Source: Octopus sinensis
Lineage: Eukaryota
Reading direction: 5' to 3'
Assembly (NCBI RefSeq): GCF_006345805.1
Contig: NW_021836152.1
Location: 208,018-272,017, forward strand
Length of the DNA stretch: 64,000 bases
The notes under the pieces were generated by a model. The model was not told where the DNA came from, did not search any database, and was given only the letters and a program-made list of their open reading frames with translations. Shown in pieces: positions 37,353-43,585 of the stretch. The position numbers were made by a program, and so were the translations under genes. The stretch's first letter is position 1; every line of letters begins with the position of its first letter.

Positions 37353-37403
37353 CAACTGGCTCCACCTCTGTTTGGACTTCATTGTCAACAAGCGTTAAAG
37401 TAA
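37353..37403 (-). CDS. 51-nt symmetric phase-1 micro-exon: (V)TLTLVDNEVQTEVEPV
   Basis: ttttgtttcag| ... |GTGAGT; open frame; joins in frame to the 33957 exon. Confidence 0.8.
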
Positions 37404-38198
37404 CTGAAACAAAATTTTCTAAATTTTACACTTTACAGAAAAATGTCTTTATCTTAATAATCCAAATTTTGTTATTGTGTGACATTCTTGTCATTGCTGG
37501 TCAGATGGTGACCCGTACGGCTTGGGTCAACATTTTCATACTTTCTATAGGGATACCATGTAATAACTCAATATTCAGGTCCACAAGTAAATAGACTAAC
37601 CTTCATATATCTCCCTATTAAGACTTCCCACATAATCTAAGAATCACTCTATTAAGATATCTACATAATCTAATAATTATCTTATATAATTATCACTTGA
37701 TAACACTGATTATCTCTTAGCTTAATTTTCCCTTTCATCTATCGGAGCCCAATCTATGATATGGCATTGTTCTCTCACCTCCAGATTTCCCTAATGAATA
37801 CCCAGGAAGAATGGGACGAAATGGTGAGTAATGATCTTGAAATGTTGAGCCTAACAGTCACTTGGCAGTTTGCTGTGCTTGAGAACAACCACCAAACTAA
37901 ATAAAATCAAGGTCATAAGCGCATGTTTGTCCCCGAACAATGCCTCCCCCACACATGTCGCATTCTCCTCCATTCTCCCTCATGTATCTACATGCACATA
38001 TGATGCCCTACTGTTTCTCATCCCCAACCATATCCACCATTCCTCCTCCCTCTACTATCTTCCTTTCGCAAACTTATAAACTAACCTTCCCTCACAGATC
38101 ACTCTCTGTCGTATTTCACTATTTTCTCTATCGGCACATGAGGCAGCCATAGAAACAAAGGCAAAATAAACATTTATAGGCTGTTATTTTATACTTAT

Positions 38199-38255
38199 CA
38201 ACTGGCTCTGCTACTACCATCGTCTGCACTTATTTCCCTTCAAGCTTTAGATTCT
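38199..38255 (-). pseudogene. Dead paralogous micro-exon (57 nt): NLKLEGK*VQTMVVAEPV
   Basis: Intact acceptor tttatttcag, internal TAA, donor mutated to ATAAGT. Confidence 0.7.
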
Positions 38256-38538
38256 CTGAAATAAATATTATTTACAGTAAAATCTTTTTATCATTATCAA
38301 TAATCTATATTCTGTTATTGTGAGAGATTCCTATCATCAAACGATCACTCAGGTTTCGTCAATATTTATATACTTTCAACAGTGGCCCCAACAAAATTGA
38401 TTGGCATTCCTAAATCTCCGCTCTCAATTAAGACATCTTACATATCTCATTTACTTCTCACGTATCATCCTTAATAAAGTAGATGAGGTAATGGCAAACT
38501 TGATAGAAATCAATAAGGTAATGTTGATTTATACTCAC

Positions 38539-38589
38539 CAACTGGCTCCACCTCTGTTTGAACTTCATTGTCAACAAGCATTGAAGAAA
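38539..38589 (-). CDS. 51-nt symmetric phase-1 micro-exon: (V)SSMLVDNEVQTEVEPV
   Basis: atctatttcag| ... |GTGAGT; paralog of 37353-37403 with shared flanking introns. Confidence 0.8.
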
Positions 38590-39312
38590 CTGAAATAGAT
38601 ATTCCTAAATTTTACACTTTACAGAAAAATGTCTTTATCTTAATTAATAATCAAAATTTTGTTATTCTGTGACATTCCAGTCATTGATGGTCAACTGGTG
38701 ACCAGTACGGCTTGGGTCAATATTTTCATACTTTGTACAGTGATACCATGTAATAGCTCAATATTCAGGCCCACAACTAAATAGACTAACCTAATATATC
38801 TCCCTATTAAAACATCTTACATAATCTAAGAATCACTCTATTAAGATATCTCCATAATCTAAAGTTATTGACATTCTTCTCCTCTTCTAATTCTGATGTC
38901 AATGAAGCTGGTCTCCAAACATTTAACCACAAACGCATGTCACAATACTTCAAGTAGGATTAATATACACCTGCTCTCTTTTTAAAAGGTTGCTGCTGGT
39001 AAACTTTAATCTTACACCCCCACATCAAAATTCATCAGAATAGCATCTGATTCCGGAAATATTTGAAGATATTTCAATGTCATTAATCCTCCTTAATAAG
39101 CAGCTATTTTCAGGTGAGCAATGTTTGCTCCTAAGCAAGTGGAGCCGAAAGTGATATCAGGTATCCCAAAACACTTGTATAGAAACTCATTAACTACACA
39201 CACACACACATATATACACAGACACGCACACAATCACACACACTCACATATATTTAGGTATGTGTGTATGTATATATGTATATGTATGTAGATGTATATA
39301 CATACATATATA

Positions 39313-39603
39313 TAGATAGATAGATAGATAGATAGATAGATAGATAGATAGATAGATAGATAGATAGATAGATAGATAGATGGGATAGATAGATAGATAG
39401 ATAGATAGATAGATAGATAGATAGATAGATAGATAGATAGATAGATAGATAGATAGATAGATAGATAGATAGATAGATAGATAGATAGATAGATAGATAG
39501 ATAGATAGATAGATAGTATAGATAGATAGATAGATAGATAGATAGATAGATAGATAGATAGATAGATAGATAGATAGATAGATAGATAGATAGATAGATA
39601 GAT
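39313..39603. repeat. (GATA)n microsatellite (~290 bp)
   Basis: Direct. Confidence 0.97.
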
Positions 39604-40129: not shown

Positions 40130-40209
40130 CTGAAATAAATATTTCAAGGTTTTTAAATTTTATTATAAAATATTTTAAATCTAGATATTAATAATATATA
40201 TTTTATTAT

Positions 40210-40690
40210 TGTGGGAGTTTCTGATCATCAATGGGCAGCCTGTGTATGAACAGCTGTGTATGCTACATAGTAGTGAAATGTATGTTGTGAACACAGAGGA
40301 CGTGTAAAGTCTTGAACAAAATGGAACCAGCATGCTCCACTGGATGGTCACTGTCAGTGTGCAGGTATAAAATGCTGACATGTTTTACGATAAAAATCGA
40401 GAGTTATCACTTGTATGTAGTACGCAAGACAGACAACTCTGCTAGTATGACCATGGGATATGTATGAATAAGATCAGCTGTATAAAGAGCACCGATCTGT
40501 AAATGTGGAGAGAACCTCAAGAAAAATGGAAGGAAGTGTTGAGAAATGAGCTTCAGATCTTGAACCTGAGAGTCAATCGGTAGAAAAGCGGGTATCTTTA
40601 AGAGACATATGTTCCTCAACCAATGGGGGTGGGTAGTATCTCTGAATATGAAGAGTCTTGGGTAGAGACCGCCCATCCAATGCATTTTAG
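40210..40690 (+). mobile_element. Old RTE-like LINE 3' remnant
   Basis: Degenerate MLHSSE / MLHW / WKEVLRNEL-type RT C-terminal coding traces. Confidence 0.5.
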
Positions 40691-40859
40691 AAAGAAAATC
40701 AGACGATAAATGATGAGGATGTATTCGATTGTATTGTTATATGCAGCTAGTATTTATCTTGAAAGAGAAAGAGACAATGGTTTTCTCAGCAGCAAACCAA
40801 AGTCATTACTTCGATAAAGACAATGCTTAGTGGATGGAACGATAAATTTAATGTTGTAT

Positions 40860-41620
40860 CTAAGAAAAAACAACAGCGAAAATAAAAGTTTTAAAACATT
40901 GTTAAAAGATATGAAGAGGTAATATTTTGTAACAGCAACATCCGACATAATTCGTGATATAACAACTCAAATCTTCCTAATTTAACTAAGATATTGCACA
41001 CAGTTCCTACAACACCATTTCCAAAACACTTCCGTCCCATTAATTGTCGATAAACACAGAAATTGCTACACCAGTCGTCTCGCAAGCTGAAAACACTGAT
41101 ATACACCAGTGGAGCTTAGTACTATAGAGAGAAATCCGTGATTATCTGGCAATGTTTAACTTGACCATTACAAAAGTCGTTAACACTAGAAGGAGTTCAG
41201 ATGTACAATTACAAACTGTACGGTGGAGAGATATCATATTGTACCCTGACTGCTACCACAATCCAACCGTATACAACAAAACGAGGCATTTTAGCAGTTC
41301 CTTGTGTGATGATTAACAAAATGAAAGAATGGAATATCTGACGGGTTAGATCTGTATTTTTCACTGAGGCTATGACCAGCTCCTTCTGGTTATAGATCTA
41401 TTAAAGGGCCGAGTAGAAATTAAACCTCATGTAGTAAGATTTCTCTCTCCGACACATAATAGACACAAAAAATTGAGATAAGCCCGCCCCAGCACCAATT
41501 TTATCAGAGAATGAAGTAAATAACTATCGAATAAACAAAACATAAACGACTTTTTACTATTTTAGATAAATCAATTAATTACTGCACACCAATTTCTAAT
41601 TGCTGGACTAACTTCAAACA
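40860..41620. repeat. Diverged paralog of the intron segment 33958-35060
   Basis: Colinear matches, e.g. caagctgaaaacactgatatacaccag and aagaatggaatat.tgacgggttagatctg. Confidence 0.85.
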
Positions 41621-43522
41621 ATCTGACACCGCGACAGCAGGTATCCTGAAACATTGTACACTTGCACAAAACCTTATTAACTACATTTAACTGGTCATCT
41701 ACATACTATTGTATAAACATATCCGAAATGATACATAATAACTGACAATTAAGCATATATAAGCCTGACGCAAATATAGATCAAACTGGAAGCATTGAAT
41801 CTGACGTTTGCCAGGAAGTTTCGAATACTCTCATTCTTTTAACCCATTCCCATGTTTTCGTTTTCATCTTAATGCCCTTACAATTATTGGACAAAGAGGC
41901 AGCGGACCACTGTCCGAAACTTTTATAAGTTTTTCCCTAAACGTATGCATAGTTTCTCCTGCTACTTTGAACTTCACTTTGTTCTGCTGATCTTCCACAA
42001 ATAACAGATTGTATTATTTATTTGCTTCAAGTCAAATTCTTGACAAAGTAATCATTCCACCCAGGCTATCCAGAAATATTTGCATAACATTTTGGTCTCT
42101 ACATAGTATTTTTATGTCATCCATGAATGTCTTGTCTGGTGCTTTCACTTGGGTCATTTCTTCTGAGCAAACTACTGATCTAAGTAACATCTCCAAACTG
42201 AAGGATTAATATTGTGCACCCTGCTCCATTTCCGATGACAGTCCCTGTAAAATGGTTTGTAATGAGCTGCCTTTTGAAATTGTTAAACCAGCTCATCATC
42301 AGACCTTAAAATTTCCCCAGTATGTAAAAGAAGTTCATTGATTTCATCAATAATTTGTATGGTCCACACCCATATGCTTTAGAGCTATCAAGCCGTACAA
42401 CATTCAAATTACTTCAATTCTTCTTTGTGTGTTGATCCCAGTTTTACATTTCACGTCCTACAAACCAAGAAAGTCAGGGGATTCCAGTCCTCTGCACACT
42501 TTCCATCACATATCAATTATTTTGTAGGTGTATAGGTGATCTCTTAGCATGTACATCCACGTAAAGCTTGCCATTAAGGATTGAAACTAATTTCAACTGG
42601 CCAATTAATTGTGCTTCAGATTCCTTTGATATGTAAACACTTTCTGCTTTATATCAGTCATAAATACCTTCTATTTTATACCACAACCCCTTACTATTAT
42701 ATAATGCTTATAGCTTGTTAGAGTTGCTGCAGTCTTTGCTCTTGCCTCCCTTCTCGCTGCAAACACTCAGCTAAAATTTCAATTCCTCGCTTTCTTAGAG
42801 GTTTTATTAGAAAGACATCAACGTTTCTTTTGCTTGTACCACAATAAAATGCACCTAGGACACTTTATCAAGTGGTTTGTTTTAGGAAATTATACCCTCA
42901 TATAAAACCTAGAATGGTTAACTGAGATGTGTCTGCTATCCGATCAAGAGGTGGGAGCATGGAAATCAGACGATGAAGGATGAAGATATTGTCAATTATT
43001 GTATAGTATCTTGCAACCAGTATCTGTTTTGAAGTAAGAAATATAGACAACTATCACAGAAATAAGTTGGATAAAGGCAATGTGTAGCGTATGTAATGAA
43101 ATATCTGTGAAATAAAACAGACTGCTTATACTTGAAATACATTTCCAAGTACTTTTTTAGAAACATCAGCCAAAATAACAACATTAATCTATCAGCAAAC
43201 ATAGTATAAAAGTAAAACAAAGAGAAATGTCATTAACACGAATGTTTATCGCTAAACAACTACAAATATTAGTTTTCTCTTCCAAAGTGAAATATTAAAT
43301 CTATTGTCTTCGAAGTTATCCATTTTACAAACCATGCTCACCACATCGGATATTTTGTGAAATTACAATAATATCGATATGTTTAATAGAATTATTATGC
43401 AGCAAACTTTTCAAATGCAAAATGTGGATTGGAACATGTTGTCAGTCATTCTGACAAAGAAATTGACACAAGTAAAGGTAAAATTTTCAGAAATCGATAA
43501 GGTAATGATATTTTATCCTCAT

Positions 43523-43585
43523 GATCATATGATTCCGTTTCAAGCATAGGAAAGTTAGGTGACAGTATTGTTTGCGACTATGTGT
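43523..43585 (-). pseudogene. Dead micro-exon slot (63 nt): T*SQTILSPNFPMLETESYD
   Basis: Homologous flanks; acceptor degenerated to ttttccg, donor to ATGAGG, internal TAG; lies exactly 3527 bp from the 47112 exon. Confidence 0.55.

Follow-up and report, generated by a model that had tools for sequence, protein, structure and literature searches.

Modular, alternatively spliced exons that encode disordered linkers are known from the PEVK region of titin, which acts as an entropic spring without a docking motif. Motifs docking the dynein light chain LC8 (DYNLL) have been summarized in a loose consensus, with [D/S] at position -4, K at -3, any residue at -2, [T/V/I] at -1, Q at 0, [T/V] at +1, and [D/E] at +2 (PMC3078936). 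In more detailed rules, the residues at -1 and +1, on either side of Q at 0, are of medium size and either form hydrogen bonds or are hydrophobic; P, D, or E is called for at +2, where hydrophobic residues are disfavored; the side chain at -3 should be large, the residue at -4 should make a polar contact, and that at -2 should not be a bulky aromatic, several like charges being unfavorable (PMC6607443). How the number of LC8 rungs controls multivalent clients is currently studied with engineered constructs of ASCIZ, Nup159, and KANK1. Here, we analyze 64,000 nucleotides of the Octopus sinensis genome (positions 208018-272017 of contig C12623, NCBI NW_021836152.1; in the following, the window, whose base 64000 is the end of the contig), in which small linker exons, each encoding one QT motif, lie on the minus strand upstream of a single large exon.

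This array is of known kinds, being comparable to multivalent LC8-type linkers and to tandem cassette-exon linkers, and its family context is previously undescribed. In the literature, we found no paper joining TQT motifs with exon structure or splicing and no description of the octopus MIB2-like linker family to which the exons trace back. We consider it moderately probable that these are real, duplicated cassette exons encoding a linker of MIB2-like origin, that they now belong to a chimera with a beta-propeller protein, and that they carry putative LC8 docking motifs.

Results

Three symmetric linker exons precede a large terminal exon. The exons, designated C, B, and A in the order in which they would be joined to the large exon (Table 1), share an AG acceptor with a polypyrimidine tract and a GT donor, and the same sites are present in 17/17 near copies. 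Each is of phase 1-1, with two bases completing the previous codon and one base left over, and therefore any subset of them preserves the reading frame. The sequence-only reading had claimed consensus splice sites, this phase, and in-frame splicing into the large exon at 33957; all of its coordinates were confirmed on the minus strand, and the spliced peptide that it quoted, ..FPKSQNKQVQTEAFTSKDASQQV VSSMLVDNEVQTEVEPV VTLTLVDNEVQTEVEPV DDHYMQIP.., is correct. It had further remarked that none of these exons appears among the listed open reading frames (ORFs), which follows from their length, each being shorter than 60 residues. In a scan of the minus strand of the window, 13 open phase-1-1 candidates with strong splice sites were found in total, and those bearing the motif were exons A, B, and C plus two alternative acceptors 15 nucleotides upstream; on the plus strand, the motif occurred in none of nine equivalent splice candidates. 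Exon C is the homolog of the first linker exon after the RING exon in paralogs (SPKFADKGVQTDLQLLEPTSEQS), and exon B includes the ATG used by RefSeq as the start codon at a sibling locus on contig C9206.

Two further copies have decayed. They are the dead slots described earlier as keeping K-stop-VQT and T-stop-SQT, which we located at 38255-38199 and 43585-43523, respectively, and the latter is dead in the same manner in both Octopus vulgaris loci described below. Homologous intron flanks are common to all five copies, and the duplicated flanks of the two tandem units that gave rise to exons A and B are 88-93% identical. Next to the second of these slots, a 3527-bp unit repeated in tandem within the intron begins directly upstream of 43585-43523; one O. 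vulgaris locus has a single copy of it (L002 21616-23825). A further segment of a repeated element, 42955-42905, has as its counterpart in the O. vulgaris models P0061 and P0069 a bridging exon that leads from a frameshifted RING exon to the large exon.

Evidence for the use of such exons comes from gene models at sibling loci, which were recovered by searching the RING exon of L002 against 1.84 billion representatives, followed by cluster look-ups. Isoform X1 of LOC118761373 (P0071), on contig C9206 of the same genome, reads MLVDNEVQTEVEPV/VTLTLVDNKVQTEVEPV/DDHYMQIPRF..., and isoform X2 (XP_036355111.1, P0068) is identical to it except that the second exon, of 17 residues (51 nucleotides), is missing. 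Mapping onto C9206 identified the exons of these isoforms as the homologs of exon B, exon A, and the acceptor at 33957: the exon B homolog (C9206 18630-18671) is exon 1 of both XP_036355111.1 and isoform X1, and the exon A homolog is the cassette exon skipped in X2. To our knowledge, the NCBI pipeline predicts alternative isoforms only with transcript support. Given this practice, the two isoforms lend indirect support to both inclusion and skipping of linker exons, and the earlier proposal that these exons are skippable is borne out to the extent that X1 and X2 display the predicted junctions and the skipping of one 51-nucleotide exon. Likewise, XP_036354468.1 and XP_036354469.1 are isoforms differing by one 78-nucleotide VQT exon, XP_036354558.1 has four linker exons in series, and XP_036355812.1 has four VQT exons of 26 residues. 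The window copy itself is presumably transcribed.

The same array is present in O. vulgaris at two loci, of which L001 lies close to the end of chromosome OX597817 and L002 is part of scaffold CATOCA020000001. Counting the exons in different octopus species had been suggested as a check, and these loci contain four and seven linker exon copies, respectively, with AG/GT sites and frame intact in both; exon C is conserved at L001 5705-5776 and L002 27515-27586. Among the sibling loci, the number of linker exons ranges from three to seven, in agreement with the suggestion that duplication varies it. We searched the O. sinensis assembly (G000; 2.72 Gb in 13,516 contigs) with a 228-nucleotide unit consisting of an exon and its flanks and obtained at least 42 matches of 68-96% identity. 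Those of 86-96% identity are located on five sibling contigs, and those of 68-75% identity are on many other contigs, without a copy of the large exon.

Diversity among the copies points to selection on the encoded peptide. In a 40-nucleotide core (LVDNEVQTEVEPV) of 17 distinct near copies from both species, pairwise diversity was 0.039 at codon position 1, 0.026 at position 2, and 0.148 at position 3, compared with 0.136-0.162 in the flanking introns. Third positions are thus about as diverse as the introns, and positions 1 and 2 are approximately 5-fold less so. The differences that separate the exon types (GTT/GTC, GAG/GAA, GTG/GTA, and GAG/GAA) are all synonymous, and the nonsynonymous changes in the core are mostly singletons. 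The first 11 nucleotides of the exon (VSSM, VTLT, and ETPA) vary faster than introns. These patterns are supportive rather than conclusive with regard to protein-level constraint. Aligned linker peptides show the window exons to be homologous to the linker exons of MIB2-like family members, and judging from these sequence comparisons the window linker exons are genuine, tandemly duplicated coding cassette exons, which did not arise by chance.

As the alignments and gene structures indicate, the linker exon family originates in the linker of an octopus-specific MIB2-like ankyrin-RING family, an origin absent from the sequence-only reading. A RING exon is situated 0.5-13 kb upstream of linker arrays and on the same strand at C27:18.126 Mb, C4534, C10104, C8427, C29:12.215 Mb, and C9449, and it ends in phase 1 (..GRGRV + G/gtaag). 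Downstream of linker arrays, two exons splice via phase-1 introns into a Pfam Death domain, scoring 38 and 36.5 bits against a cutoff of 22.6. The annotated proteins P0053 and P0055 follow the order ankyrin repeats (ANK), RING, linker exon(s), and death domain; one to four linker exons per family gene stand between the RING exon and the two-exon death domain. RefSeq names these paralogs "E3 ubiquitin-protein ligase MIB2-like" or "MIB1-like."

A subclass of linker arrays, termed CPK after its peptide (CPKFEEKAVQ[TAV]V..ESV), was found at L022, L029, and L030, corresponding to C27:8.16 Mb, C27:10.12 Mb, and C10645 of G000. These arrays are followed by a 72-nucleotide exon, SLNLEENRSHSTSKKVAVKQQQV, which resembles death-domain exon 1 at its two ends only, and no RING exon is listed near them. 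They may be degenerate members of the family.

In the window, the linker exons lead into a different C-terminal module. The large exon comes from a separate, octopus-only family, unrelated to the MIB2-like genes, of which the genome has at least 86 copies, most of them on contig C30; almost all protein matches of this family come from Octopus species, and it has no Pfam match. The earlier designation of its product as a propeller protein is well founded: an AlphaFold2 model of large-exon residues 1-715, for which 21 family members were aligned, is all-beta and has a predicted local distance difference test score of 76.3, and its top 50 matches in the PDB are tandem beta-propellers (IFT-A, Utp21, LRP4/6, and DDB1), with E values down to 1e-21. 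According to this model, residues 1-715 fold as tandem beta-propellers. A poly-serine run of approximately 28 residues (codons ~945-975) lies farther along the exon; its length varies, with a 30-nucleotide insertion in L001 and 30- and 27-nucleotide indels in L002 (alignment position 2832).

The usual form of this family is a single ORF of about 1800 residues with an additional N-terminal region of about 190 residues. In the window subfamily that region is missing, and the ORF reaches no farther than nine codons upstream of the acceptor. Neither the window nor L001 or L002 was found to contain a death-domain exon. The window gene is thus a chimera: behind the linker array, the place of the death-domain exons has been taken by a propeller gene that is truncated at its 5' end. 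Searching the window with the N termini of P0003 and P0038, paralog N-terminal domains, and RING and death-domain peptides yielded nothing significant. A weak RING-like match at 60023-59958 falls inside a reverse-transcriptase frame of the long interspersed nuclear element (LINE) type and was dismissed as chance. Upstream of exon C, only 24 kb of the contig remain. The siblings C9449 and L002 retain the RING exon upstream, and L002 also retains ANK exons; the ANK-RING exons of the window gene would accordingly be expected beyond the contig end, its 5' region being displaced off the contig by the 3527-bp tandem repeat (43595-51725) and LINE-like sequence. The GC-rich region at 52-64 kb, which contains the LINE-type frame (..ARDKSPGLDGLPYELY..), is without counterpart in sibling loci and probably represents transposon insertions separating the array from the 5' exons.

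The subfamily as a whole is eroding, and among its copies the one in the window is the likeliest to be a functional gene. Its large exon is fully open, with 1619 codons, and that exon is broken or shortened in 5/6 sibling copies in this genome and in both O. vulgaris copies. Sibling open frames in this genome extend over 955, 831, 831, and 1430 codons, and the C9206 copy has 11 stops; L001 carries one stop and a 7-bp deletion, and L002 carries two stops and a 1-bp insertion. Pairwise synonymous divergence (dS) of the large exon is approximately 0.032-0.034, with a ratio of nonsynonymous to synonymous divergence (dN/dS) of 0.45-0.5, a pattern that fits the comparison of one constrained copy with decaying copies.

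The VQT anchor (positions -1, 0, and +1) is present in all three linker exons of the window. On the loose LC8 consensus, the motif of exons A and B, D-N-E-V-Q-T-E, scores 5/6, fitting at -4 and +2, with a small N at -3 and three acidic residues. That of exon C, N-K-Q-V-Q-T-E, also scores 5/6, fitting at -3 and +2, with a polar N rather than D or S at -4. Among paralogs, DKGVQTD scores 6/6, and DRCVQTE, DKASQTE, and DKETQTQ score 5/6. Peptides with a candidate LC8 motif include KSQNKQVQTEAFTS and MLVDNEVQTEVEPV and, from paralogs, KFADKGVQTDLQLL and TFKDKETQTQEEPV. Across 32 distinct linker-exon peptides, Q at 0 is the most conserved column (3.48 bits), and K at -3, T at +1, and V at -1 are high as well. 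Counted from the spliced peptide, the anchors in the window linker are 24 and 17 residues apart. The exons encode 17-24 residues each, rich in E, V, T, P, D, and Q, and are placed between folded domains; from its composition, the window linker is probably disordered.

Proteins of the LC8 type (PF01221, Dynein_light) are represented in the genome by at least 22 matches, many of which cover the full 86 positions in one open, intronless frame (examples in Table 1). The LC8 family may thus be expanded in octopus.

Table 1. Positions of the linker exons, the large exon, and other features in the window, with examples of LC8-type matches elsewhere in the genome. A slash marks a splice boundary.
Feature	Position	Strand	Details
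Linker exon C	40129-40058	minus	72 nt, phase 1-1; peptide (G)FPKSQNKQVQTEAFTSKDASQQV; tttcag/GGTTTCCC...CAAGTTG/gtgagtat
Linker exon B	38589-38539	minus	51 nt, phase 1-1; peptide VSSMLVDNEVQTEVEPV; tttcag/TTTCTTCAATG...CCAGTTG/gtgagtat
Linker exon A	37403-37353	minus	51 nt, phase 1-1; peptide VTLTLVDNEVQTEVEPV; tttcag/TTACTTTAACG...CCAGTTG/gtgagtat
Terminal large exon	33957-29099	minus	1619 codons plus stop (29101-29099); phase-1 acceptor ttattcag/ATGATCAC, cag/AT
Decayed linker copy	38255-38199	minus	57 nt; in-frame TAA; donor GA, not GT
Decayed linker copy	43585-43523	minus	acceptor cag to ccg; in-frame TAG; donor lost (at/gagg)
Two tandem units giving exons A and B	38862-37264	minus	~1186-1190 bp, exon plus intron flanks; the same distance apart
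3527-bp unit, in tandem ~2.3x	43595-51725		97-98.6% identity; within intron
Segment of repeated element	42955-42905	minus	reads MLPPLDRIADTSQLTIL, then G/gtttta; acceptor cat, not cag
LINE-type reverse-transcriptase signature	59850-60200	minus	in GC-rich 52-64 kb
Poly-serine run in large exon	31000-31130	minus	~28 residues
(ATAG)n microsatellite	39308-39603		~74 copies; between exons C and B
(AGAA)n microsatellite	17341-19307		~487 copies; cause of extreme GC/AT skew at 16-20 kb
(TAGA)n microsatellite	57059-57751		~174 copies
PF01221 match (example)	C25:12066054-12066305
PF01221 match (example)	C8597:280489-280740
PF01221 match (example)	C8459:191318-194076

Discussion

With splice sites, phase, annotated isoforms, and codon-position bias in agreement, a set of real, duplicated linker exons of MIB2-like origin in a propeller chimera is the interpretation that we favor, and LC8 docking is, on the motif comparison, the best single hypothesis for what the exons encode, with the chances that it is correct about evenly balanced. 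Several findings weigh against this interpretation. The RefSeq isoforms come from C9206, a locus with a pseudogenic large exon (78% identity, 11 stops), and the LOC118761373 models yield products of only 102-119 residues. The published models nearest to the window locus, P0038, P0003, and P0002, skip the linker exons: in P0038, the ANK-RING exons are joined straight to the large exon, P0002 starts at MQIP within it, and P0003, from O. vulgaris, is an ab initio model whose exons at either end are doubtful. The first (L001 10001-10279) lies in an insertion without counterpart in the window, the last ones (L001 29335-31797; window 20240-20308) lie in a 171-bp satellite repeat, and the model is likely an annotation artifact. 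The window itself contains no RING or ANK exon. The counts behind the codon bias are small, approximately four to five synonymous versus five mostly singleton nonsynonymous changes, in copies that are related to each other. With respect to the motif, E at +4, P at -8, and V at +6 are conserved to a degree similar to that of the anchor, and since the whole exon is conserved, the anchor may be kept partly by recent common descent. Exons A and B have N instead of K or R at -3 together with their three acidic residues, exon C of O. vulgaris has V at +2, and in many paralogous copies the anchor is VQA, VQV, SQR, or KT or the residue at +2 is hydrophobic (V or L).

These observations leave room for a rather unlikely explanation, namely that the exons are spliced but functionless relics in a young chimeric subfamily undergoing decay, whose QT motif is kept only through recent duplication and whose copy number changes and skipping are neutral by-products of segmental duplication within an intron rich in repeats. 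The broken large exons of most siblings and of both O. vulgaris copies would be expected under this explanation, and so would the two of five window slots that are already dead, the singleton nonsynonymous changes within the motif (Q>E in C8846/C10426, E>K in C9206, and E>G in L002), and the tandem repeats of recent origin in the introns, which measure 1.2 kb, 3.5 kb, and, in L002, ~6 kb. However, the large exon of the window has stayed open over 1619 codons, although relatives at a dS of ~0.03 have each gained two to three disruptions, and pairwise dN/dS is 0.45-0.5 rather than 1. In the exon core, moreover, only third positions have reached the diversity of introns, and the exon class keeps its sites and frame across paralogs that are only ~70% identical, neither of which is expected of relics.

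It is quite improbable, in our view, that the exons encode a functional spacer between the RING and the C-terminal module whose peptide, P-K-x-x-[DE]-K-x-V-Q-T..E-P-V, binds a partner other than LC8 or sets length or charge. Death domains and RINGs occurring together suggest signaling adaptors, which use many kinds of short motifs. Conservation reaching beyond the seven-residue LC8 core (P at -8, K at -7, E at +4, P at +5, and V at +6) is in line with such a spacer, as are the many copies that violate LC8 rules yet retain frame and splice sites. In contrast, the best-conserved column is Q at 0, accompanied by V or T at -1, T at +1, and K at -3, which is the LC8 signature, and canonical KETQT and DKGVQTD are present in paralogs. 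A TRAF-type reading of VQTE was also considered and rejected, the TRAF2-type consensus, [PSAT]x[QE]E, not fitting VQT[EV].

That the units are not exons at all and merely carry chance splice-like sites within a repeated intronic or transposon-derived element is hardly credible: the unit is repeated, the region is repeat-rich, and the nearest published models skip it, but independent RefSeq models, including alternative isoforms, use linker exons, the codon-position bias points to coding use, the phase chain from RING (1) through linker (1-1) to death-domain exon rebuilds a Pfam domain, and genome copies number in the tens, not thousands, and where checked lie on the same strand downstream of RING exons. 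A transposon-derived pseudo-exon was rejected for its poor fit to copy number, genomic context, and codon bias.

Returning to the duplicated cassette exons, the predicted product would consist of an ANK-RING part, presumably encoded off the contig, three linker exons, and a multi-propeller module of ~1620 residues. The RING exon, the linker exons, and the C-terminal module form a phase-1 chain, and therefore linker exons can be inserted, duplicated, or skipped without a break in the frame. In the most likely mechanism, LC8 dimers would dock onto the motifs of two chains and zip these together in parallel, so that the RINGs of the two chains, and likewise their C-terminal modules, would be brought close to each other. 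How many rungs are formed would depend on exon duplication, from one gene copy to another, and on exon skipping in any single gene, and the rung number would in turn set avidity and stiffness; LC8 binding, dimerization, and a regulated use of valency are all presumed in this scheme. We tentatively propose, as a possibility that we do not rate highly, that octopus possesses an exon-modular dimerization linker with one LC8 motif per exon, whose valency is varied by duplication (three to seven exons among siblings, one to four among paralogs) and by skipping, and which has been shuffled onto the death domain or the multi-propellers of a lineage-specific RING E3 family. An increase in the number of intronless LC8 genes may have gone along with it.

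If LC8 does bind the motifs, the locus would be a natural case of a multivalent hub interaction whose valency is laid down exon by exon, with one motif in each, and could be tuned both genetically and by splicing. It would then provide a tractable system for how the number of LC8 rungs controls dimer stability and linker rigidity. If LC8 does not bind them, what remains is a neat case of tandemly duplicated exons within a gene family in decay. The locus also records a recent domain swap, from death domain to beta-propellers, via exon shuffling at phase-1 introns, which unites two large, uncharacterized octopus-specific gene expansions.

Compared with the MIB1/MIB2 E3 ligases, the octopus paralogs likewise have ankyrin repeats followed by a C-terminal zf-C3HC4_3 RING. 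However, in the octopus family there is only one RING, and what comes after it are linker exons and either a death domain or propellers, whereas the C terminus of a true octopus MIB2-like protein (P0064) has two RINGs and neither linker nor death domain; the octopus family models examined showed no MIB/HERC2 or ZZ domain. The titin PEVK exons resemble the octopus exons in being small, frame-neutral, and tandemly duplicated, with their number tuned by duplication and skipping, and differ from them in that each octopus exon bears one putative docking site.

The LC8 site of the dynein intermediate chain shares an identical KETQT core with peptides encoded by paralogous linker exons (NRTFKDKETQTQEEPV and NRTFEVKETQTLAEPV). 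It is a single site in a conserved dynein subunit, and the window exons have VQT rather than TQT. A further likeness is to the multivalent LC8 clients ASCIZ/ATMIN, Nup159, and the L2 linker of KANK1 (PMC5963919, PMC10046861, bioRxiv 10.1101/2025.07.16.665182), which similarly combine several [T/V]QT-anchored motifs in a low-complexity linker, with a spacing of ~17-24 residues, mixed motif quality, and a copy number varying between relatives. In octopus, in contrast, the putative LC8 motifs belong to an ANK-RING/death-domain or propeller protein, and each has a symmetric phase 1-1 exon to itself; their number is altered when exons are duplicated in tandem, and annotated isoforms leave out one motif at a time.

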